This document shows positions 1,436-17,059 of a stretch of 64,000 bases of DNA, piece after piece; within the stretch, counting starts at the first letter, position 1; every line of letters starts with the position of its first letter. Source of the DNA: Trichosphaerium sp. ATCC 40318 (taxonomy: Eukaryota; Protista; Tubulinea); contig JALMLS010000596.1 of the NCBI GenBank assembly GCA_038496445.1, forward strand, positions 124,001-188,000, given 5' to 3'. The notes under the pieces are model-generated. The model saw only the letters and a program-made list of their open reading frames with translations. It was not told the origin of the DNA and searched no databases. Both the position numbers and the translations under genes were made by a program.

Positions 1436-4308
1436 ATGTCAAACGAAAGCTCTGACGAAGAATTTTCTGATTTTGAGGATGAAGAAGATTTCCTAGCTCA
1501 ACGCGCTAAATGGAATGATCAAGAGCGTATCGCCGAAAAGCCAAACAAATATGGTACGGGAACTACAAAAACAAATAAAACAGCGAGCGGCAAAACGTTT
1601 TTTTTGTGTTGGAGAAAAAACCAACCGTTTTGTCTCTCTTTTGTAAAAAAAAACATTAATATGGCACGTGGGTACCTAAAAACAAAAAAACGTGCTAAAA
1701 TAACAACAGCAAATGCGGTTTTTCTCTTTTTTCATTAATCTGATTCTGTGATGTTAGGCCTCGTTGATCCAGAGCACTTTATGATAAGAAGGACATTCAA
1801 CACAAGCGGCTTTGTTAAAAAGTTTCCACCCAAAATTAAAGGCTCAAGGAAGCAAACTGTGTTTAAAACAATACAAGGGTTTTATGGCAATAAACACGGT
1901 ACAGCATCTTCAAAAGTGGTTGTTACGAAAGTAGATGTCGCAAAGTTCCCTGAAAACGGAGGTACAAATTATTCATCACCAACAACGCTTGAACGACGCA
2001 AGACTCATGCCAAAATGCGACAAGACACTAACTCGAGCTTTATTTTTTGTTTATCACGTGCGCCAGGGCAAAACATTTGTTTGAAGCCTTGGTTTTATTT
2101 TGAAATGAAACGCGTTTATCTTGACGCTGTTTACCACGTGTTTTCAATCAGTTTAGAATTTTATCTCTGAATTTAATAGGATTTGGTATTTCGTTTGTTT
2201 GGCATGACCCTGAACGCAAAGCAAAAAAAGTACAGGTTGTTGGTACATTTAATACATGGCGAAGAGATAGACCAATTACTCTTCAGTGTATTGAGTTACA
2301 CACAGGTACATAAAACTCTTTTTCGTCCTCTTTTTCGTCTAACTTGAAATTGTAGAGAATGTTTGGGCTACAGTTGTATCAGAACTACCAGATCTTGATG
2401 ACGAAGATGCTGACCACGAGTATATATTCATAGTTGATGGCAAAGAGGTACAAGCATTATCATACACTTTTTATTGATTTATTTTCAGGTTGTTGATTAC
2501 ACTAAAAAAGTTGTGGATCGCACAGATGGAAATGGAAAAGCGAATATCTTAAAAGATACTGAAGAACACTACTTACGAATAGCATCGTCTGAAGGACCAT
2601 TCTTGTACTGTGATAAGGTATCAAAAACCCTCACAACTATTTCTTGTTTTGTGCTAAACACTTTTAGGAGCCACAAGTACGTACAACATATGGATTGTAA
2701 TGGTACATTTAATTTACTCAACATAGCCAAATGATTTCAGTTGGTACCTCAACTTCGCACACACAGATGTGTTCGAGTATTATGGTACAAAAGGTTTATT
2801 TGCTCAAGATGAAATTCAAGTTGCAGAGCATCCAGCTCTTGCTTCTGTTCGTGAAAGTACGTTTTGCTGAACCATCTCATAGCTTCATTTCTTCATTGCT
2901 TCTTTTTAATACTTTGTTCCCTTTAGTGCTACTTCAAAAAGCTGATGAGGCTGATGGTAAAACAAAACAGTTAAATACTTATGCACGTCAATACGAAAAG
3001 GGAAATATGGAAACTTCATCTCCAACACCCATTCTCATTCGGTACCTTCCATTTATTAGTCGCCTTCTTCATTGGTAAATAATCTTATTGGGTTTTTTTA
3101 ATAGTGGCGTTGAACGTCTTGGTGTTATTGATACAGAGAAGCTGTATGGCTCAAAATTAGGAAGAACGAAATCAAAGAAGGCAATTAAAGCTGGAATTTC
3201 AAAAGTTGAGAATGGACCTACAGTGACTAATCTTATTTGGTATGGAAATACTATTTGTAATAATTTTATTCAACTGACCTTTTATGTTAGCATGGAAGCA
3301 CCAGGTGCCTGACGAATATTTATCACAGAAATTGTATTCACAGTAAAATAGGGTGCCAGAAAGATTGGGGAAAAGAGTACAAAAAGTGGCAGCTTGAGTA
3401 TGCGTTACGTACTGCTTACACATCATTTGTATCTGGTACCCTTTTATTTTTAATTCATTCAAGATTTTGTTTCCATTAACTTGATGTTTGTAGCTGTTCA
3501 TGAATCTAAGATGGGTCTTGCAGAAAAGAACGCCGATGAGAACAAAAAGGCAGAAGATAAAACAGAAGACGCCGGTGATGAAAAACAGGACGATGGTGAT
3601 AAAAAAGCAGAAGCTAAAACAGAAGACGCTGGTGATGAAGAACTGGACGATGATGAAAAGGACGATGACTCCGATGATGACTCTGATGAAGATGAGTCTG
3701 AAGAAGATGATGATTTCTGTGTAATTATACACACTGGTAACTGGTACGTTGTAATACTACCATTATTTTGATTCTAATCTGATAATTGAAAATAGGGGTT
3801 GTGGAGCGTAAGTTATTTTAATAATGAGAAGAAAACAAGAAAACTCGAACAAGTTTTATTTAATTGTTAAATGTCTTGATAGGTATGGCAATGATTGTGA
3901 GTTGATGGCACTAATTCAAATCGCTGCTGCTTATTATGCCAAAGTAAATGTACTTGTTTACTATCCATTTGATGATAAAGGCGATGTATGATTTAACAAC
4001 AAACAAATTATTAGTTTTTCTTTCTTTTTCTTTCTAATAACAAGTTATTCACATTCTTCACAGAAAGCACTAGCTTCTGCACAGTCACTATGGAATGCAT
4101 GGATAGGAGAGGAAAATAGTGATGACGAAGATGATGAAGAAGGTGATAAAACTGGGGGTGAGAAGGAAAGATACGAAGTACGTTCACAATGATTGGTTTG
4201 AAGTTCAACAAAGAAAGTTTATTTTCGCAATAGGTGCACTGTCCTTACATGTTCTTGGATATGCTGTACCAGAGAAAGTATAAATGGAGTGAAGGTAATA
4301 AGACCTAA
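1436..4308 (+). CDS. CBM48 (AMPK-beta-type glycogen-binding) + PARG-like macrodomain protein, copy 1; 16 exons, about 570 aa
   Basis: Spliced product contains VQVVGTFNTW...HEYIFIVDGKEVVD (CBM48), WYLNFA...GLFAQDEIQVAEHPAL (PARG QEE-type signature, QDE at 2805-2813), TNLICMEAP, LRTAYTSF, IHTGNWGCGAYGND (PARG TGNWGCGAFGGD loop) and ends KYKWSEGNKT*. Micro-exons at 2668-2676, 3291-3304 and 3796-3807. Confidence 0.85.
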
Positions 4309-4816
4309 AGTTAGTGTATATCTTTTGCACAATATATAGCAACGGGTGGATGATAAACAGTCTTGTTTGTACAGTACTGTACTCACTGAAATTACAACAA
4401 CAATAAAAATTTCATCAAAAATTGATTTAAATCACGTTTTTTGAATAGAGAGAACTTTATTAAGTAGTTTCGCTTCTTATATACAATCACGCACGCGTGG
4501 GAAATATGTTTTAACTGTTTTTATTGTGCTTTTTTGACTTTGAACGTCAAAAAAAAATCAACTCTATTTTGCATAAAAAAAAACTATTTTTGCGCAGAAG
4601 ATTTTATACTATTTTCTCTTACAATTAAAAAATGACCAATGGCACATGGGAAGCTTTCTTTTCTTGTTGGACTTATAGAACGCGGCCAAAAGGATTTCCT
4701 TGCAGGCATTGTGTGAATGAAAATGCAGTTGGTTAACGGTATGTTCAAAACCATATAGATAGTAGATCAAATACACTTGTTCTATATACTTGCATAACGT
4801 GGCTCAACTGATAAGG

Positions 4817-5956
4817 ACATGCACTATTTTTTTTATTTTTGCTCCGGATATTTTCGGCTTTTGACGGTTTTGTGTCGGAATTTTCCTTGTTTTTCCGGAT
4901 AACGAGATGAATTATACTAAGGGCAATTGGTGTTTTTTCCTTGTTTGGTGAAAGCTGCTGGCAATATGGTGCACTCACCTTGCTTAGTGTCAAAGCTGTA
5001 CCTAATGGCATTGATGTCAATGAGGTTGGGCAACTGGAAATTGCCTTACCTTAGAGAAACTTGGTACTTGAAAATTGGAGCATGTACCTTTGGTGGTGTA
5101 GATTGAAGGCTGTACAGTGTTTTTAATGCTCATTTGTTTCCACATTCTTTGAGCACACTTGTTTTATGGCTCGTAGAAACAGGAGGAAGTGTACTTATCT
5201 CCCTGTTTATGCAATTGACAATTGTTGACACCAAGTGTCAAGTGACACTTGCAATGTGTCAGTTTAAGGAACAATTGCTAATTGTACGCCAAAAGCAATC
5301 ATAGGAATTAATATGTAAAAAGTAAACATGTCCATGCCGTGAAAATTGCATACTGAAATTACAAAACAGATAAAAAAATTTGACAATAGCAATTGGCAAT
5401 TGCTTTGTACTTACAGATTCGTTGCATTCCTCCAATGGTTTGTCGTTTGAATTAATCTTGTTGAGGGGATTATTACACCTCTGGGATTTGTGTATATTCT
5501 CTTTGTGGCAGTCTGTGCTGATTGTGTTGTTTCAATGATTCTGAAAACAAAGGTAGCAATTTACAATTGCAGAAGGATACCTTTTTTAGATGGAGCATGT
5601 ACAGGCTGTGAACAGTACATAATGCCCCTCTGTTTCTGAAAGGGAGTGTACTCAAACTAAGATGAGCTAATGTTCATGCCATAACAATAAAGAAGTTGTG
5701 TTGAGCACCTCAATTGGTACTCATTCGTACCATCTTCAAGGTACTGTTTCATGGAAGAGTGCAAGTTTCTCAAAGCTGTTTGTATGTCACTGAATGCATA
5801 AGCAATTTGTATTGTACGTCACATTAGGTACCCACCTGTAGGACCTTGGTCACATGACAACAGTGAACAGAGTATCCGGAAAAAAACGTGTAAAGTCGGC
5901 GATATCCGTCAAAATCCGAAAATATCCGGAGCGAAAGTAAAAAAAATAGTGCATGT
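4817..5956. repeat. Internal inverted repeat pair, about 85-bp arms (4817-4902 / 5872-5956)
   Basis: acatgcactattttttt..ttttgctccggatattttcggcttttgacgg is the near reverse complement of ccgtcaaaatccgaaaatatccggagcgaaagtaaaaaaaatagtgcatgt. Confidence 0.85.
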
Positions 5957-6727
5957 ACTAAGAGTCCGGTAACATATCATCATCATAAACCAGAAGAAGT
6001 TGGAGATATCATGACAACTTATGTCTAATGCACTCTGCTGATTATACATTGTTTGCATTATGTTACTGTGTTGTAAGAAAATGAGTGTACTTTTAAGTTC
6101 TGTTTGTTTTTGAACGTTAGCCATAATGAGTCAACTGTTATTTCACATTAATGACTACCCATGTTGAGAGTATGGCTGCCGTTTTTTGGTTTGTCTTTGA
6201 GATTTCGCCTAAAAATCCCATGCCAATTTTTTTGTTGTACAACAAACAGTTATTAATACGCTTTCTGAGGTAAGCAGGGAGAGATTCAGGTCTAGCAAAC
6301 CGTTTATAAACTCAAATCAACAAATACTAAAAGTAGTGCATCAAACCACTCAAAAATCATGCCTACACAAGCACAGGTGTTTGGGGTTTGAGTACAATGA
6401 ACCAATTGAAGAAGGTTCTACAGGTCAGCACAAAAAAAATGAAACATTGTCAAAATACCCTCATATGTGAGGGTGCAGAGATAAAGTAACATGTTTAAAA
6501 AGGTAGTAAACGACTACCATTTTTGGGTAATTTGGATAGCGACTTTATTGCTAGCCAAACTCCTTCCAATGATACTAGAGTATTCAAGGCAATTGATTGG
6601 AGCTTTTTAGACTATGATGCCTATAATTTGTAAAAAACACATGTAAAAACTTAACCTACTCATGGAGATATTGCAAGATAATTTTGAACATTACTTATAA
6701 GCGAATATGCCCGACATATTAATTATA

Positions 6728-7480
6728 GTATTGTGTGTTTCATTCAAGTTTTACTAATATTTTCTAGAAAGTGAGTTTTTAGCACTTTTAGTAGATCTAA
6801 CAAGATCTGACACTTCTGTCAAATGGTGTAGATCTACCACAATGTGAACTATTTGTGTTACAATGTTGTCCTTCATTGTATGACTTATGTACCTTGTAAG
6901 TGATAGCAAAATTTTCATGTAAGTTTCAACAGACCATAGAAGATGACCGCAGCATTTTACCTACACAAACTATACGCAGTACGATCAAACCACAGAAGTG
7001 CTCATGAGCTAAAAGCGAATTAAAAAGGTATGATGTCCTACAAAGCTATCGCATTACCGCCAAACACGGTATGAATGCCTTAAACACTGTTTGCAGTATG
7101 TTTTGCTTCAAAAAATCAACGTACGTGTATAGCTTACTAGCGCTACGCCTGCGCCTACCCCACGCTAACAGAAGCGCTATGGTAGCATCCAAACAGCAAT
7201 GAAGGTGTAACAACGTCAAAACCGCCAAAACACCACCAGCGTTGCTGTAGGCTTTGTAAACGCCGCTAGGCGTCAAATATGTAAATAAAAAAGTTTGCTC
7301 TGGGGTTTGTTAAATCACGTGGGTTTGAAACGGTTGGATTCACTGGACAGGCGTGAGGGTAGATCACAATTAAAAAATGGCATTTGCAAGATCTGTCAGA
7401 AGTGCCAAATCCGTCAGATCTGACAGATCAGGCAGAAACTGGATTATTTTTGCTAAAACTTGAATGAAACAGACAATATC
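6728..7480. repeat. Second internal inverted repeat pair (about 6728-6830 / 7385-7480), rich in AGATCT
   Basis: attgtgtgtttcattcaagtttta vs taaaacttgaatgaaacagacaat; atctgacacttctgtca vs tgtcagaagtgccaaat. Confidence 0.7.
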
Positions 7481-7752
7481 GCTAACAATTTAGGAAAGAA
7501 AATGAATTATCGTTGTCAATAGATAATGTACAAAAAATAAATTTGTTTTCGGCTAGGACTTGGCAATTTTTTCCAAATGGGAACTACATAATAAATTACT
7601 CTACTAGCCCGCAGTTAACGACATGTATTTTTTCAATATTATGTGAAAGGGTCGAAATAAAAACCGAGCCGGCTCACTATTCGTTCAAATAAAGAGGAAC
7701 AAGATATAAAGTCAATTTTATTCTATCAATCAGTTTTTAAAGCGTACCAAAC

Positions 7753-10515
7753 ATGTCAAACGAAAGCTCTGACGAAGAATTTTCTGATTATGAGGATTCA
7801 GAAGATTTCCTAGCTCAACGCGCTAAATGGAATAATCAAGAGATCGGAGAAGAGAAAGAGAGTATAGTAGAGAAGCCAAACAAATATGGTACGGGAACTA
7901 CAAAAAACAGCGAGAGACAAAACGTTAAAAAATATTTAATATGGCGCGCGTGGGAACCTAAAAACAAAAAAACGTGCCAAAACAACAGCAAACGCGGTTT
8001 TTCTCTTTTTTCATTAATCTGATTCTGTGATGTTAGGACTCGTTGATCCAGAGCACTTTATGATAAGAAGAACATTCAACACAAGCGGCTTTGTTAAAAA
8101 GTATCCACCCAAAGTTAATGGCTCAAGGAAGCAAATTGTGTTTAAAACAATACAAGGGTTTTATGGCAATAAACACGGTACAGCATCTTCAAAAGTGGTT
8201 GTTACGAAAGTGGATGTCGCAAAGTTCCCTGAAAACGCAGGTACAAATTATTCACACGACTCATACCAAAATGCACAAGATTCACCAACTCGAACTTATT
8301 TTTTTGTTTATCACGTGGGCGCCATTTGGTGAAACTTTTTATTCGAACTTTTCATATTTTTGTCTGAAAATCTTCACGTGTTTTCGATCAATGTAGAATT
8401 GAAAGTCTGATTTTAATAGGATTCGGTATTTCGTTTGTTTGGCATGACCCCGAACGTAAAGCAAAAAAAGTACAGGTTGTTGGTACATTTAACACGTGGC
8501 GAAGAGATAGACCAATTACTCTTCAGTGTATTGAGTTACACAGAGGTACGTAAAAATCGTCTTCTTATTCGTCTTTCGTCTAACTTGAAAGTGTAGAGAA
8601 TGTTTGGGCTACAGTTGTATCAGAACTACCAGATCTTGATGACGAAGATGCCAACCACGAGTATATATTTATAGTTGATGGCAAAGAGGTACAAGCATTA
8701 TCATACACTTTTTATTGATTTATTTTCAGGTTGTTGATGACAATAAAAAAGTTGTGGATCGCACAGATGGAAATGGAAAAGCGAATATCTTAGAAGATAC
8801 TGAAGAACACAACTTAGGCATAGAATCGACTGACGGACCATTCTTGTACTTTGATAAGGTATCTAAAACCTCACAACTTTTTGTTTTGTGCTAAACACTT
8901 TTTGCCTAGGAGCCAGAAGTACGTACAATACATGGATTGCAATAGTACATTTAATTTACTCAACATAGCCAAATGATTTCAATTGGTACCTCAACTTCGC
9001 ACACACAGATGTGTTCGAGTATTATGGTACAAAAGGTTTATTTGCTCAAGACGAGATTCAAGTTGCTGAGCATCCAGCTCTTGCTTCTGTTCGTGAAAGT
9101 ACGCCCTGCTGAACCATACTCATAGCTTTATTGCTTCTTTTTAATACTTTGTTCCCTTTAGTGCTACTTCAAAAAGCTGCTAAGGCTGATGGTAAATCAA
9201 AACAGTTAAATACTTATGCACGTCAATACGAAAAGGGAAATATGGAAACTTCATCTCCAACACCCATTCTCATTCGGTACCTTCCATTTATTAGTCGGCT
9301 TCTTCATTGGTAAATAATCTTATTGGGTTTTTTTAATAGTGGCGTTGAACGTCTTGGTGTTATTGATACAGAGAAGCTGTATGGCTCAAAATTAGGAAGA
9401 ACGAAATCAAAGAATGCAATTAAAGCTGGAATTTCCAAAGTTAAGAATGGACCTACAGTGACTAATCTTATTTGGTACGGAAATACTATTCGTAATCTAT
9501 TTTAAAAATCGACTGACCTTTTATGTTAGCATGGAAGCACCAGGTGCCTGAAGAAATGTTTATCACAGAAATTGTATTCACTGTAAAATAGGGTGCCAGA
9601 AAGATTGGGGAAAAGAGTACAAAAAGTGGCAACTTGAGTATGCATTACGTACTGCTTACACATCATTTGTATCTGGTACCCTTTTTTTTTAATGCATTCA
9701 AGATTTTGTTTCCATTAGATTGACATTTGTAGCTGTTCATGAATCTAAGATGGGTCTTGCAGAAAAGAAGGCCGATGAGGATAAAAAGGCAGAAGATAAA
9801 ACAGAAGACGCCGGTGATGAAAAACAGGACGATGGTGATAAAAAAGCAGAAGCTAAAACAGAAGACGCTGGTGATGAAGAACTGGACGATGATGAAAAGG
9901 ACTCTGACAATGACTCTGATGAAGATGAGTCTGAAGAAGATGATGAGTTATGTGTAATTATACACACTGGTAACTGGTACGTTCTAATACAAGTATTAGT
10001 TTGATTCTAATCTGATAATTGAAAATAGGGGTTGTGGAGCGTAAGTTATTTTAATAATGCGAAGATCGAACAAGTTTTATTTAATTGATAAATGTCTTGA
10101 TAGGTATGGCAATGATTGTGAGTTGATGGCACTAATTCAAATCGCTGCCGCTTATTATGCCAAAGTAAATGTACTTGTTTACTATCCATTTGATGATAAA
10201 GGCGCGGTATGATTTAATAACAACAAACAAATTATTAGTTTTTCTTTCTAATAATAAGTTATTCACATTCTTCACAGAGCGCACTAGAGTCTGCACAGTC
10301 ACTATGGAGTGCATGGATAGGAGAGGAAAATAGTGATGAAGAAGGCGGTGAAGGCGATAAAACTGGGGGTGAGAAGGAAAGATACGAAGTACGTTCACAA
10401 TGATTCGTTTGAAGTTCAACAAAGTTTATTTTCGCAATAGGTGCACTGCCCTTACATGTTCTTGGATATGCTGTACCAGAGAAAGTATAAATGGCGTACT
10501 GGTAACAATACCTAA
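7753..10515 (+). CDS. CBM48 + PARG-like macrodomain protein, copy 2
   Basis: Same exon structure and motifs as copy 1 (AQDEIQ, TGNWGCGAYG); ends KWRTGNNT*. Confidence 0.85.
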
Positions 10516-10817
10516 AGTTAGTGTGTATCTTTTGCACATGTACCAACGGGTGGATGCTAAACAGTCTTGTTTGTACTGTACTCACTGAAATTACAACAAC
10601 AATAAAAATTTCATCAAAAATTGATTTAAATCGTGTTTTGAATACTAGTCCCACAAACCAACAGCGGTTAACGACATGCGTACTACCAGCTTTTTCCAAT
10701 ATTATGTGAAAGCGTCGAAATAAAAACCGAGCCGGCTCACTATTCGTTCAAATAAAGCGGAACACAAGATATAAAGTCAATTTTATTCTATCTATCAGTT
10801 TTTAAAGCGCACCAAAC

Positions 10818-13564
10818 ATGTCAAACGAAAGCTCTGACGACGAAGAATTTTCTGATTTTGAGGATGATGAAGATTTCCTAGCTCAACGAGAGAAATGGGA
10901 TAGCAAATCAATGGAAGGCTCCAAAATCAAACGTGCAAACAAATATGGCACGTGCGGACCTAAAAACAAAAAACGTGCCAAAATAACAACAGCAAATGCG
11001 GTTTTTCTCTTTTTTCATTAATCTGATTCTGTGATGTTAGGCCTCGTTGATCCAGAGCACTTTATGATAAGAAGAACATTCAACACAAGCGGCTTTGTTA
11101 AAAAGTATCCACCCAAAGTTAATGGCTCAAGGAAGCAAACTGTGTTTAAAACAATACAAGGGTTTTATGGCAATAAACACGGTACAGCATCTTCAAAAGT
11201 GGTTGTTACGAAAGTAGATGTCGCAAAGTTCCCTGAAAACGGAGGTACAAATTATTCACCATCAACAACGCTTGAACAACCAAAGATTCATGCCAAAATG
11301 CACAAGATTCACAAACTTGAACTTTTTTTTTATTTATCACGTGCGCCCATGGGCGAAACATTTGTTTGAAGCCTTGATATTTCATACGAAAGGCGTTTAT
11401 CTTGACGCTGTTTATCACGTGTTTTCAATCATTTTATGATTGGAATCTGAGTTTAATAGGATTCGGTGTTTCCTTTGTTTGGCATGACCCTGAACGCAAA
11501 GCAAAACAAGTACAGGTTGTTGGTACATTTAACACGTGGCGAAGAGACAGACCAATTAATCTTCAGTGTATTGAGTTACACACAGGTACGTAAAAACACT
11601 GAATTCCCAAGATTAACTTGAATATGTAGAGAATGTTTGGGCTACAGTTGTATCAGAACTACCAGATCTTGATGATGAAGATGCCAACCACGAGTATATA
11701 TTCATAGTTGATGGCAAAGAGGTACAAGCATTATCATACACTTTTTATTGAATTATTTTCAGGTTGTTGATGACACTAAAAAAGTTGTGGATCGCACAGA
11801 TGGAAATGGAAAAGCGAATATCTTAGAAGATACTGAAGAACACTACTTAGACATAGTATGGTCTGAAGGACCATTCTTGTACTTTGATAAGGTATCTAAA
11901 ACCCTCACAACTTTTTTTTGTTTTGTGCTAAACACTTTTTGCCTAGGAGCCAGAAGTACGTACAATACATGGATTGCAATGGTACATTTAATTTACTCAA
12001 CATAGCCAAATGATTTCAGTTGGTACCTCAACTTCGCACAGAGGTAAAGTTACAATTCATTATACAGCGCTCTTTGTTTGAATTGTTTAATTGATTGGTT
12101 TTAGAGACATTTTCAAGTACTATGGCGCAAAAAGTTTATTTGCTCAAGATGAAATTCAAGTTGCAGAGCATCCAGCTCTTGCTTCAATTCGTGAAAGTAA
12201 GTTTTGCTGAACCAAACTGCTTGTAGACGAATTTTCTTTATAATTGTTATTGGTCTTAATGCTATTACAGTGCTACTGGTAAAGGCAACTGAGGATGATG
12301 GTAATATAAACCAAATAGGTACTAATACACGTACACTAGAAGAAGGAAACCTCGCTTCTTCATCTCCAACACCCATTCTTATTCGGTATGTTCACACTTT
12401 TAAAAGTTCGTCTTCTTCGTAAATAATCTTATTGGGTTTTTTTAATAGTGGCGTTGAACGTCTTGGTGTTATTGATACAGAGAAGCTGTATGGCTCAAAA
12501 TTAGGAAGAACGAAATCAAAGAAGGTAATTAAAGCTGGAATTTCCAAAGTTAAGAATGGACCTACAGTGACTAATCTTATTTGGTACGGAAATACTATTC
12601 GTAATCTATTTTAATAATTCAACTGACCTTTTATGTTAGCATGCAAGCACCAGGTGCCGAAAGTTTTGTACTAGAAAGGAATTGTATAACTTCAAAAAGG
12701 TTGTCAGAAAGATTGGGGAAAAGAGTACAAAAAGTGGCAACTTGAGTATGCGTTACGTACTGCTTACACATCATTTGTATCTGGTACCCTTTCATTCATT
12801 CAAGATTTTGTTTCCATTAACTTGATGTTTGTAGCTGTTCATGAATCTAAGATGGGACTTGCAGAAAAGAAGGCCGATGAGGACAAAAAGGCAGAAGATA
12901 AAACAGAAGACGCCGGTGATAAAAAACAGGACAATAATGAAAAGGACTCTGACAATGACTCTGATGAAGACGAGTCTGAAGAAGATGATGAGTTATGTGT
13001 AATTATACACACTGGCAACTGGTACATTCTAATACAAGTATTATTTTGATTCTAATCTGATAATTGAAAATAGGGGTTGTGGAGCGTAAGTTATTTCAAT
13101 TTGAGAAGAAAACGGACAAGTTTTATTTAATTGTTAAATGTCTTGATAGGTATGGCAATGATTGTGAGTTGATGGCACTAATTCAAATCGCTGCCGCTTA
13201 TTATGCCAAAGTAAATGTACTTGTTTACTGTCCATTTGATGATAAAGGCGCGGTATGATTTAATAACAACAAACAAATTATTAGTTTTTCTTTCTAATAA
13301 TAAGTTATTCACATTCTTCACAGAGCGCACTAGAGTCTGCACAGTCACTATGGAGTGTATGGATAGGAGAGGTAGATAGTGATGAAGAAGATGATGAAGA
13401 AGGTGATAAAACTGGGGGTGAGAAGGAAAGATACGAAGTACGTTCACAATGATTCGTTTGAAGTTCAACAAAGTTTATTTTCGCAATAGGTGCACTGCCC
13501 TTACATGTTCTTGGATATGCTGTACCAGAGGAAGTATAAATGGCGTGAAGGTAACAACACCTAA
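10818..13564 (+). CDS. CBM48 + PARG-like macrodomain protein, copy 3 (extra intron 12044-12104)
   Basis: Same motifs; WYLNFAQR|DIFKYYGAKSLFAQDEIQ; ends KWREGNNT*. Confidence 0.85.
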
Positions 13565-14380
13565 AGTTAGTGTATATCTTTTGCACAATATATAAATGGA
13601 ATAAAGGCAACACCTAAATTTACAAGAAACCATAAGTGTTAAACAATCAAAACAATAAAACACATTGTCACGTGACAATCACTTTTTGCATTGGTCTGTA
13701 AGCCAATTTTGTGAATATTGGTTTCGTTGCATAAAGTTTTGATATTCAGCTGGGTTACTATCACAAACAAATAAATAAACAACAAAGAACAAATCTACGG
13801 GCATCTGCAAGGTGCGTGCATCGACGAACATAGATACTCGGTACCAGAGACCTTGCCTAGAAAGTATTTGAACAAACAAATAGTATTACAGTGTCCTCAT
13901 TGTTTTCGTTCAAATGTACAAAACTTGTGTGGCCTATAAAGGTTACTTATCTAGCAGAAATCTAAAAACATTAATTGTACTTATACAAAGACAGTGGCAT
14001 GGTTTCGTTAGAAAGATGATAAGAATCATTCAACGGCTTACAAGTGGTCAATAGTGTTATACTAACATGTTTGTACTCAGTTATCATAACAGAACCAGAA
14101 GGTTTGAATTCACATAACCTTACACGCAATAGTATGTAATTATTAGCATATACTAAATGTGGTTCCTTCTGCTAATTTTTTTACAGTAACATATTTCAAA
14201 CACCTTCTTTTTCACTCAGTTTTCGAACAGTTTTTTTACCTTTCTGAACCGTCTTTATGGTAACTCAAACCGCGTTCAAATAACAAACAGAGTTATTCAG
14301 AAAAAGTATTCGTTCAAATAAAAGAGGAACGCAAGATATAAAGTCAATTTTATTCTATCAAGTCATTTTTTTCACTAAAC

Positions 14381-17059
14381 ATGTTAAACGAAAGCTCTGA
14401 CGGTGAATATTCTGATTTTGAAGATGAAGAAGATTTTATATCTCAACGGAAGAAATGGTCCAATGAAACAACAGAAGAAGGCTCTACTATCGAACGTACA
14501 AACAAATATGGCACGTGCTGATAGCTAAAGGAACTAGTGAGCTTTATTTCACTAATATGGCGTTAGGACTCATTGATCCAGAACACTTTATGATGAGAAG
14601 GACATTCAACACAAGAGGCTTTGTTAAAAAGTATCCACCCAAAGTTAAAGGCTCAAGGAAGAAAACTGTGTATAAAACAATAGCAGAGTATGCTAAACAC
14701 GGTACAGCATCTTCAAAAGTGGTTGTTACGAAAGTAGATGTCGCAAAGTTCCCTGATAACGCAGGTACAAATTATTCACCATCAATAACGCTTGAACACA
14801 ACGCAAAGATTCATGCCAAAATGCACAAGATTCACAAACTTGAACTTTTTTTTGTTTATCACGTGCGCCCATGGGCGAAACATTTGTTTGAAGCCTTGAT
14901 ATTTCATAACCCAACGGTTTTCGAAAATCTAACTAGATAAAATTTTGGCTTCTAGAACAACATATTTTTTTCACGTGTTTTGAACTGGTTTAACATGTGA
15001 ATTTATTAGGACATGGTGCATCATTTGTATGGCATGACCCTGAACGCAAAGCAAAACAAGTACAGGTTGTTGGTACATTTAACACGTGGCGAAGAGATAG
15101 ACCAATTAATCTTCAGTGTATTGAGTTACACACAGGTACGTGAAGCTCTTTTTCGTCTTCTTTTTCGTCTAACTTGAAATTGTAGAGAATGTTTGGGCTA
15201 CATTTATAGGAGATCTTGAAGAGGGAAAACATGAGTATGTGTTTCTAGTTGATGGTAAAGAGGTACAAAGGTGTTATAATACTATTTATTGATTTACATG
15301 TAGGTTGTTGATGACACTAAAGAAACTGTGGTGCTTGGTGAGCATGGAAAAGCAAACGTCTTAACTGTGGCTGAATCTGAACACCACATGGAGCTGATTT
15401 CTGCCGGATTAGGTCCCTTTGAATATAATGATAAGGTACCAAACCAGTTAATTAACTGAACAAAAAACTTATCACTTCTTTACTTCTTAGACTTTGTCTA
15501 ATGATTTATTTGTAGACGCCAGGTGTACGCATATAACCCTTTTGTAGTTTGTTCCTTAATTGTATCACGTGGTAAATTATTTACATTGCACAAGGATTCT
15601 GATTTTAATTGGTACCTCCACTTCGCGGGCAGGGATGTTTTCAAGTACTATGGTTCAAAAGGTTTTTTTTCTCAAGGCGAAATTCAAGTCGCAGAGCATC
15701 CAGCTCTTGCTTCTGTTCGTGAAAGTACGTTTACTGAAACAGCAATTCCACACCCCTTCACAATTTGAACATTGTAAAACGTGTTTTCTTCTTTTTTTAT
15801 TGTTCCTGAATGTCTCCTTTCTTTTAACGTGTCTGTAGTGCTACTTGAAAAAGAAAAGGAAGTTGATGGTAATATAAAGCAGTTAGGTACTTTCACACGT
15901 CAATGTGAAGAAGGAAAAATGGAAACTTCATCTCCAACACCCATTCTAGTTCGGTATGTTCTTTTTGTTTTTTTTATCAATTTTACATACTAAGTGAGGT
16001 TTTGAAATAGTGGTGCTGAACGTCATGGAGTTGTTAACACAGAGACGCTATATGGGAGAAAATTAAGAGAAGTAACTTATCCTCGAGCAATTAAAGCTGG
16101 AATTTCCAAAGTTGAGAATGGACCTACAGTGACTAATCTTATTTGGTATGGAAATAATATTCGTAATAATTTTATTCAACTGACCTTTTATGTTAGCATG
16201 GAAGCACCAGGTACAATAGCAGTTGCCTAAGCAATGTTCTAATAGCTAACTATTGTTAAAACAGGGTGCATGAGTGATTGGGGGAAAGAGTACAAAATGT
16301 GGCAACTTGAGTATGCGTTACGTACTGCTTACACATCATTTGTATCTGGTACCTTTTATTCATTCAAGATTTTGTTTCCATTAGATTGACATTTGTAGCT
16401 GTTCATGAATCGAAGATGGGTCTTGCAGAAAGAAATGCTAAAAAAGAAGAAACAGATGAGAAAAAAGAAAAAAGCGACAAAGTCGTGGAGGATAGTGAAG
16501 TAAATGTACTTATACATACAGGAAATTGGTATGCTTGTATAGTATGATTTTATTGTTGTAACTTATAAGTCAATATAGGGGTTGTGGAGTGTAAGTTTGA
16601 CAACACAAGACTCTGTATAATTATTCTCTAAATGTCTTGATAGGTATGGCAATAATTATGAGTTGATGGCACTAATTCAAATCGCTGCTGCTTTTTATGC
16701 CAAAGTGGATAACCTTGTGTATTATCCCTTTAATAAGATAGGCGAAGTACGTCTCCTTTTTACAAATTACAACTCTTTTTTTGTGTATTAATTGTAAATA
16801 GGAGGCATTTGATAATGCAAGGTCTTTGTGGTACAAATGGACAACTGGCAGAGAGGAACTCAATGATTATGACAGTGATGACAGTTGTGCAGGAGATTAC
16901 CTAGACCATGCTGCTGAAATAAAAACCGAAGTACGATCCAGACAACATTTTGAACTTTCGTTGAAATTAATACATTTGTACAAATAGGTTTTCTGCCCGT
17001 ACTTGTTCTTGGATTTTTTGCACAAGAGAAAGTATAAATGGCATACAAGTAACACCTAA
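14381..17059 (+). CDS. CBM48 + PARG-like macrodomain protein, copy 4 (most divergent; QGE instead of QDE)
   Basis: Most canonical CBM48 (LEEGKHEYVFLVDGKEVVDDTKETVVLGEHGKANVLTV); GFFSQGEIQVAEHPAL; HTGNWGCGVYGNN; 9-nt micro-exon 15516-15524; ends KWHTSNT*. Confidence 0.8.

Follow-up and report, generated by a model that had tools for sequence, protein, structure and literature searches.

A predicted CBM48 module nested in the catalytic fold of PARG-like proteins encoded by a tandem gene array of Trichosphaerium sp.

A stretch of 64,000 nucleotides (nt) from the amoeba Trichosphaerium sp. ATCC 40318 (contig JALMLS010000596.1; the whole stretch is called the window below) contains four tandem paralogs, copies 1 to 4 (c1-c4), which combine signatures of PARG, the poly(ADP-ribose) glycohydrolase, with a carbohydrate-binding module (CBM) of the CBM48 type. 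The locus raises the question of how such a module is joined to an ADP-ribose hydrolase-like enzyme: is it a separate domain in front of the enzyme or is it nested in the enzyme fold, what might the combination do, and where does the gene come from? An earlier note, made from the sequence alone, had proposed that CBM48 was inserted into a loop of a compact, mostly bacterial PARG-like enzyme, and that it targets ADP-ribose removal to alpha-glucan granules. Taken as a whole, we consider it probable that the genes encode PARG-fold enzymes of bacterial origin, which carry a nested CBM48 as a tether and hydrolyse ADP-ribose-type ribosyl linkages.

The PARG-like family and the position of CBM48

Bacterial relatives were collected by scanning genomes with a degenerate back-translation of TGNWGCGA[FY]G, which gave 24 loci, and the joined exons of c1 were compared with the open reading frames of these loci. 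A local phmmer search returned domains of 95 and 31 bits with ~45 % identity to proteins of 330-360 aa from Planctomycetota, Verrucomicrobiota, Myxococcota and others. With one of the bacterial frames as query, at least 465 relatives were found in a database search, all of them annotated with PF05028 only and mostly named 'hypothetical', so that the family proposed in the earlier note does exist. Its members, about 335 aa long with a range of ~330-350 aa, include Cyanobacteria (Microcoleus, Scytonema, Rubidibacter), planctomycetes and myxobacteria. The family consensus has an N-terminal motif R.TF...L...HPP...H.NK.LV, followed by G.F.Y...W.LNFAH, FAQDEIQVAEHP, HTG.WGCGAYGGN and a C-terminal F.WG.SDGN.

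When the four joined amoeba models were aligned with 69 bacterial members by hhalign, a single collinear alignment was obtained (probability 100 %, E 4.5e-58), in which residues 43-569 of c1 pair with residues 14-334 of the bacterial member P0001 and CBM48 forms a gap. The amoeba and bacterial proteins are collinear over their full length, with 33-45 % identity, and have in common the N-terminal R.TF..PP..K, NFAH, the FAQDEIQVAEHP block, PTPIL.RGVER, LYG, IEAP, HTG.WGCGAYG and, in part, the C-terminal W..[DE]GN. The segments to which the earlier note had drawn attention on both sides of the CBM are all present, i.e. RRTFN..FPPK..K..V in exon 2, EGPFLY, and KW..GN at the C-terminus. Residues invariant in the family (W..NFAH, AQDE.QVAEHP, PTP.L, R, YG, EAP, H.G.WGCGAYG) are retained without exception in c1-c3, whereas c4 deviates at the N, A and D and at the A of GCGA. 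At the C-terminus, which reads YKW-x-[ET]GN(KT), the W and GN of the family are retained and its G and SD are missing. In bacteria the proteins stand alone, with one domain and no introns, whereas the amoeba proteins have the nested CBM48, an acidic N-terminal tail, three more loop inserts and 15-16 introns in their genes. The amoeba proteins belong to a compact, mainly bacterial, PF05028-only clade of the PARG fold.

Since both segments that flank CBM48 and the C-terminal motif are collinear with the bacterial family, the module is placed in a loop of the enzyme. Exon 2 lies upstream of the module. Aligned on its own with the family N-terminus by hhalign, it gave E 6e-6 and a score of 37.5; 40 column shuffles scored 12.1 on average and 21.2 at most, and the reversed sequence scored 9.0. 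Could the protein nevertheless be a simple N-terminal fusion of a small domain like ribosomal eL20/LX, then CBM48 and then a PARG domain, with no insertion? In the PDB, phmmer with exon 2 found eL20/LX chains only (E 0.03-0.56), and the Pfam model PARG_cat_C matches only downstream of CBM48. The eL20/LX identity was rejected as a chance likeness of a strand-helix-strand unit, superseded by the PARG-family match. PARG_cat_C covers only the C-terminal half of the family proteins, which is why the nesting was not revealed by Pfam. As exon 2 is part of one full-length collinear alignment, and as the family N-terminus is part of one rigid globule in the model described below, in a part which pairs with human PARG from position 616 onward, a simple fusion is highly improbable.

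The AlphaFold2 model of P0001 is a single globule with a predicted local distance difference test score (pLDDT) of 95.8 and a predicted template modelling score (pTM) of 0.94. Compared by VIA-align with the canonical PARGs of Tetrahymena, human, mouse, rat and Drosophila, residues 14/15-327 of the model gave Z scores of 21.7-23.5, the values being 23.5 for Tetrahymena and 23.3 for human PARG (model 15-327, human 616-951), and ~270 residues were aligned with a root mean square deviation of 2.9-3.0. With bacterial-type PARG the Z scores were 17-18.6 and the alignment started at residue 39-52, and with minimal macrodomains (YmdB, alphavirus, macroH2A) Z was ~13.5 (13.6 for YmdB), the alignment starting only at residue 74-78, in the case of YmdB and the viral domains at 76-78 and for YmdB itself at 78. 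A PDB search with the family profile returned canonical PARGs only, with E 6e-13 across the diphosphate loop. The modelled P0001 has the PARG catalytic-domain fold, i.e. a macrodomain core with N- and C-terminal extensions, and the amoeba proteins, which align to P0001 over its full length, are predicted to share it. As modelled, the PF05028-only family resembles the canonical PARG of eukaryotes (Z 23) more closely in structure than it does the 'bacterial-type' PARG (Z 17-18.6).

With canonical PARG (human 4B1G/4B1H, Tetrahymena 4EPP) the family shares the fold, the diphosphate loop TGNWGCGA[FY]GG with the helix after it, and the order of a (D/N)FA strand, a loop and a Q-x-E helix. It differs in having a family-specific loop in place of GGG and QDE in place of QEE, and in lacking the helical accessory domain PARG_cat_N (PF20811), which had no Pfam match in the amoeba pieces or their homologues, the structural match beginning at human residue 616; similarity at the sequence level is detectable in the C-terminal half only. 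Bacterial-type PARG (PF10021/DUF2263; T. curvata 3SIG, D. radiodurans 5ZDB) likewise has a macrodomain-based PARG fold, including the strand before the insertion site, but its structural similarity is lower, its signature is another one, and there was no Pfam match to PF10021.

The N-terminal extension of P0001 consists of strand 18-25, helices 26-32 and 40-49, and strand 57-63. The equivalent of exon 2 is residues 16-63, inside the stretch that aligns to human PARG. At the junction the amoeba ..VVVTKVDVAKFPE-N-G-[CBM48]-K-D-TEEHYLRIAS.. pairs with the bacterial ..HVTISRYSEIPLPE-VYRPYAPD-TEIVAR.., and CBM48 stands in for eight residues of P0001 (71-78), a coil between strand 57-63 and strand 80-84. 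On this model, CBM48 is nested in the PARG catalytic fold: the N-terminal extension specific to PARG precedes it, and the first strand of the macrodomain core follows. The predicted insertion point, at residues 70-79, is on the border of the minimal macrodomain and not in its interior. The proposal that the CBM lies inside a PARG-like macrodomain is thereby upheld for the PARG catalytic fold and narrowed for the macrodomain proper, as minimal macrodomains align only after the insertion. The N-terminal segment corresponds to the PARG-specific extension in the model.

The profile and PDB searches for the module itself were made exon by exon, and most single-exon Pfam and PDB phmmer searches gave no match, the pieces being too short. 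Exon 3 of c4 matched positions 5-30 of AMPK1_CBM (PF16561) with 17.9 bits (E 0.0036) and exon 4 positions 37-56 with 18.8 bits (E 0.0019). AMPK1_CBM was the sole family matched by these two exons, in the order of the profile, and exon 3 of c1-c3 behaves alike. Each score is under the cut-off of 26.8 bits and their sum is over it. In the PDB, exon 4 of c4 found only the CBMs of AMPK beta-1 and beta-2 (15 distinct sequences, E 0.06-0.7), to which the block ..L.EG.HEY.F.VDG.. aligns. On these matches the assignment to CBM48 appears sound, and the module was found where the earlier note had put it (about 2180-2560 in c1). In contrast to the AMPK beta module, that of the amoeba is nested in another domain, and in c1-c3 the loop that precedes HEY contains an acidic insertion of 5 residues.

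A PARG-like enzyme with a nested CBM48 appears to be a layout not described before. Full-text literature searches found no paper linking PARG with CBM48 or AMPK1_CBM, and ADP-ribose glycohydrolase and glycogen binding occurred together in a single, unrelated paper only, in agreement with the remark in the earlier note that such a link had not been seen. A survey of PARG architectures lists PBZ, the Nab2 zinc finger, G8, transmembrane and L32e as the only added domains (PMC4245714), and the present architecture goes beyond these. PARGs have been divided in a review into canonical and bacterial-type enzymes, and the compact PF05028-only clade is not covered there (PMC8120803). The locus draws attention to this large bacterial clade, which has no assigned activity and whose structure, as modelled closer to eukaryotic than to 'bacterial-type' PARG, bears on the origin of the eukaryotic enzyme. 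The nested CBM48 would provide a handle on the substrate or the location of the clade.

Catalytic features and possible function

The strand LNFA and the putative catalytic helix AQDEIQVAEHP are encoded by one exon of c1, which is 67 % identical to P0052. The diphosphate-binding loop, TGNWGCGAFGG in canonical PARG, is present as HTGNWGCGAYGN, joined from three exons (HTGNW/GCGA/YG) across a 12-nt microexon and seen in this form in RNA contigs, and the family profile matches mouse and human PARG across this block. The earlier note had assigned the PARG hallmarks to every copy; this applies to c1-c3, and c4 has the variants LHFA, SQGEIQ and GCGVYG. Copy 4 is the only one altered at invariant sites (NFA to HFA, AQDE to SQGE, GCGAYG to GCGVYG), sites which are at least 90 % invariant in bacteria. 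The bacterial family, too, is without GGG and has QDE, and its AQDE.QVAEHP is at least 90 % invariant. Because QDE and the loss of GGG are common to the whole bacterial family, they do not reflect decay in the amoeba, and the residues speak for QDE as a family hallmark of an active site with a possibly shifted specificity.

As the diphosphate loop is intact and an invariant Gln-Asp-Glu helix lies at the probable position of the QEE of PARG, the proteins may bind an ADP-ribose-type nucleotide and cleave a ribosyl linkage by a putative acid mechanism of the PARG type. With the GGG loop lost, the substrate could differ from classical poly(ADP-ribose). As a tethering module, the nested CBM48 would then bring the activity to a particle or partner, which may be either an alpha-glucan or a protein, since of the three classical sugar contacts only one is kept.

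Several points weigh against this explanation. The signature GGG-X6-8-QEE of PARG is missing: c1 reads NFAHTDVFEYYGTKGLFAQDEIQ, without GGG and with QDE for QEE, and the first Glu of QEE is Asp in c1-c3 and Gly in c4 (SQGE). The equivalence of QDE and QEE is taken from the fold match and the order of strand, loop and helix, not from a residue-level structural alignment, and the insertion topology is that of the homologue P0001 as modelled, not that of a folded amoeba protein. We know of no activity for any member of the PF05028-only family, and the seven bacterial gene neighbourhoods examined contained no conserved partner genes that would hint at a function. In the CBM, alignment of IGDLEEGKHEYVFLVDGKEV to ILDLPEGEHQYKFFVDGQWV puts V (I in c1) at the position of K126 and E at that of W133. 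As regards bacterial origin, a PF05028-only cluster of Mucoromycota is on record in the ESM Atlas.

The residues W100, K126 and W133 (AMPK beta-1 numbering) are what we take to be the classical sugar-contact residues of AMPK beta. The tryptophan of FNTW, read directly from the amoeba sequence, is presumably the equivalent of W100. As only this tryptophan is kept and the equivalents of K126 and W133 are lost, glucan binding by the amoeba CBM48 is possible but doubtful. This bears on the full proposal of the earlier note, according to which CBM48 binds glycogen or another alpha-glucan and targets the removal of poly- or mono(ADP-ribose) to glucan granules. The proposal is in line with the CBM48 being of the glycogen-binding type of AMPK-beta with its FNTW tryptophan, and with moderate purifying selection on the module. 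Glucan-targeted hydrolases with a CBM and a catalytic domain are also known: laforin and SEX4 are glucan phosphatases. By analogy, they could be compared to the amoeba proteins as hydrolases physically coupled to a starch- or glycogen-type CBM, but their catalytic fold is unrelated (dual-specificity phosphatase) and their CBM is appended and not nested. In addition to the lost contact residues, the GGG of true PARGs is absent, no paper linking PARG with CBM48 was found, and we know of no ADP-ribosylation of glycogen-associated targets. The full proposal is doubtful on this evidence, and it seems unlikely that an ADP-ribose-type glycohydrolase is tethered directly to glycogen or alpha-glucan particles in the amoeba. 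If it were, glycogen or its associated proteins would be expected to carry a reversible mark, ADP-ribosyl or a related nucleotide sugar, and the metabolism of storage carbohydrates would have a layer of regulation not described so far; the compact bacterial clade would then represent a third, functionally distinct type of PARG-fold enzyme.

The loss of two sugar-contact residues would also be expected if the CBM48-like insert were a protein-interaction or regulatory module without sugar binding, in an enzyme that removes ADP-ribosyl groups from proteins or nucleic acids at sites other than glycogen. The long Asp/Glu/Ser tracts at the N-terminus and in the loops could point to basic partners, e.g. 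chromatin or nucleic-acid-binding proteins, and one bacterial member adjoins RNA-repair genes of the Pnkp/Thg1 type. However, any such partner is hypothetical, the acidic tracts vary strongly among the copies, and the RNA-repair neighbourhood is a single case. We regard this alternative as possible, although not probable. That the proteins, or at least copy 4, are non-catalytic ADP-ribose readers or pseudoenzymes would agree with the absence of GGG in the family and with the changes of c4 to HFA, SQGE and GCGVYG at sites of at least 90 % invariance. The near invariance of AQDEIQVAEHP across distant bacterial phyla and c1-c3 is typical of an active site and makes this quite improbable, and we prefer a catalytic PARG-fold enzyme with CBM48 as its tether.

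Gene models, transcripts and origin of the array

The window is AT-rich (~36 % GC) and its open reading frames are broken up, as is typical for an intron-rich eukaryote. Gene models were built by aligning the four genomic copies and reading off GT-AG boundaries (Table 1). The array is bounded exactly by the ATG of c1 at 1436 and the stop of c4 at 17059, and each copy has an open reading frame of 531-572 aa over 16-17 exons. By tblastn over the window exactly four copies were found, and no fifth. The introns are 41-245 nt long and have GT-AG ends, except that intron 1 of c3 and of c4 is GC-AG.

Table 1 Features of the array (window positions; all on the forward strand)
Feature	Position	Strand	Details
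Copy 1 (c1) gene	1436-4308	+	16 exons, 569 aa; every junction covered by spliced RNA contigs (runs X1, X5, X6)
c1 exons 1-8	1436-1553, 1758-1961, 2180-2305, 2356-2447, 2489-2617, 2668-2676, 2727-2856, 2927-3041	+	
c1 exons 9-16	3105-3239, 3291-3304, 3352-3435, 3494-3743, 3796-3807, 3883-3985, 4064-4177, 4234-4308	+	
c1 exon 2, predicted N-terminal extension of PARG fold	1758-1961	+	Strand, two helices, strand; R.TF..PP..K..V; upstream of CBM48
c1 CBM48 (AMPK1_CBM type)	2180-2554	+	Exons 3 and 4 plus 22 codons at the start of exon 5; from exon-wise Pfam, PDB, alignment gap
9-nt microexon (EPQ)	2668-2676	+	AGCCACAA between junction sides in four runs
Exon with LNFA strand, loop in place of GGG and putative catalytic helix AQDEIQVAEHP	2727-2856	+	~90 % invariant block in bacterial family
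14-nt microexon (C)MEAP(G)	3291-3304	+	CATGGAAGCACC between junction sides in X1, X6, X7
Acidic low-complexity insert	3523-3714	+	~64 aa in c1 and c2, shorter in c3 and c4; in loop before HTGNWGCG strand
12-nt microexon, encodes GCGA of diphosphate-loop motif HTGNWGCGAYG	3796-3807	+	GGTTGTGGAGC between junction sides in X1, X5, X6
Copy 2 (c2) gene	7753-10515	+	16 exons, 572 aa; 92 % identity to c1; open frame, introns all GT-AG
Copy 3 (c3) gene	10818-13564	+	17 exons, 552 aa; one extra intron; acidic insert shorter
c3-specific intron	12044-12104	+	61 nt, GT-AG, within catalytic-loop exon; loose end GCACAGAGAGACATT in X7 is the spliced form
Copy 4 (c4) gene	14381-17059	+	16 exons, 531 aa; 67-68 % identity to c1-c3; family-invariant sites altered (HFA, SQGE, GCGVYG)

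Public RNA contigs were compared with the c1 gene. A record of 1821 nt from run X1 has 0 mismatches to c1 and skips each predicted intron, as do records from three other runs. As these contigs lack the introns and carry the microexons, c1 is transcribed and spliced as modelled. Four spliced paralogs had been claimed in the earlier note; open frames are present in all four, which we take to be expressed, and for c1 the junctions are seen in RNA. The 9-nt microexon is known from the RNA contigs and is kept with AG/GT flanks in all four copies, and c2-c4 have equivalents of the 9-, 14- and 12-nt microexons. Reading through at the 14-nt microexon is stopped by a stop codon in c2 and c3. Both contamination and a pseudogene were rejected as explanations, as the copies have introns and open frames and spliced RNA exists.

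A separate RNA contig gave loose ends at 2795-2835 in runs X1 and X5, and has only the FAQDEIQVAEHP core in common with c1. Its flanks (..EDLFYAYGSP / VLGHLREALG) are nearer to the bacterial consensus, and it may come from a further divergent paralogue or from a bacterial associate.

The acidic insert maps to loop 239-247 of the P0001 model, and the amoeba proteins have further acidic tracts, at the N-terminus and close to the C-terminus as well as in two other loops. The spacer between c1 and c2 (4309-7752) is 3.4 kb of unique sequence without long open frames, with repeats only at its ends, which are flanks common to the gene copies; the spacers between the remaining copies are only ~0.3-0.8 kb.

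The ratio of non-synonymous to synonymous divergence (dN/dS) between copies was 0.4-0.55 overall, and likewise in CBM48 and in the core in most comparisons, indicating moderate purifying selection on the copies. In exon 2 (14567-14764 in c4) the synonymous divergence of c4 from c1-c3 was 0.02-0.07, far lower than in the rest of the gene (0.33-0.6), which suggests gene conversion over this exon. Given the copy tree [c4,(c3,(c1,c2))] and its presence in c3 alone, the c3-specific intron looks like a recent gain.

Maximum-likelihood phylogeny places the four copies together (SH-aLRT 100), on a long stem inside the bacterial family. The position of this clade is not resolved; it stands beside verrucomicrobial, myxococcal/spirochaetal and cyanobacterial/planctomycete groups, with other bacterial lineages more basal. 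A transfer from bacteria in the distant past, with introns gained later, would fit this picture. The test by phylogeny suggested in the earlier note thus places the copies inside the bacterial family, but transfer is not proven, because the eukaryotic sequences in the tree are the four copies of the window only and because of the Mucoromycota cluster mentioned above. A HMMER search of 1.84 billion representative proteins with exon 2 found none at E <= 1e-3, so there is no close eukaryotic relative among these proteins, such a single-sequence search being blind to the bacterial relatives. Metagenome contigs scanned with exon 2 contained no relative either, and searches of the ESM Atlas by features and by shape returned PARG clusters, none with a CBM. 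Most likely, the gene would have come from bacteria long ago, become intronised, received the insert and then been amplified in tandem. The locus would illustrate how a probably bacterial gene has turned into an intron-rich, tandemly amplified eukaryotic one, in which microexons, an intron probably gained recently and traces of gene conversion are found.

Some bacterial members of the family have features of their own. In a 4.7-Mb bacterial genome (L029:6152-10248) the PARG-like gene is followed by the RNA-repair genes for a Pnkp-type protein (AAA_33 + Metallophos + PNKP_ligase) and Thg1, an arrangement absent from the six other neighbourhoods examined. One verrucomicrobial contig has three divergent family paralogues within 6 kb (L021:435-5813). 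The member P0099 has an N-terminal extension with the Cys-X5-Arg phosphatase loop VHCRAGISRS (residues 88-106; DSPc E 0.0014, under the Pfam cut-off), and judged by this motif it would be a fusion of a phosphatase with a PARG-like enzyme. Finally, a family member with 38 % identity over residues 93-334 is encoded on a 49-kb contig from a viral collection (L032:3001-3714).

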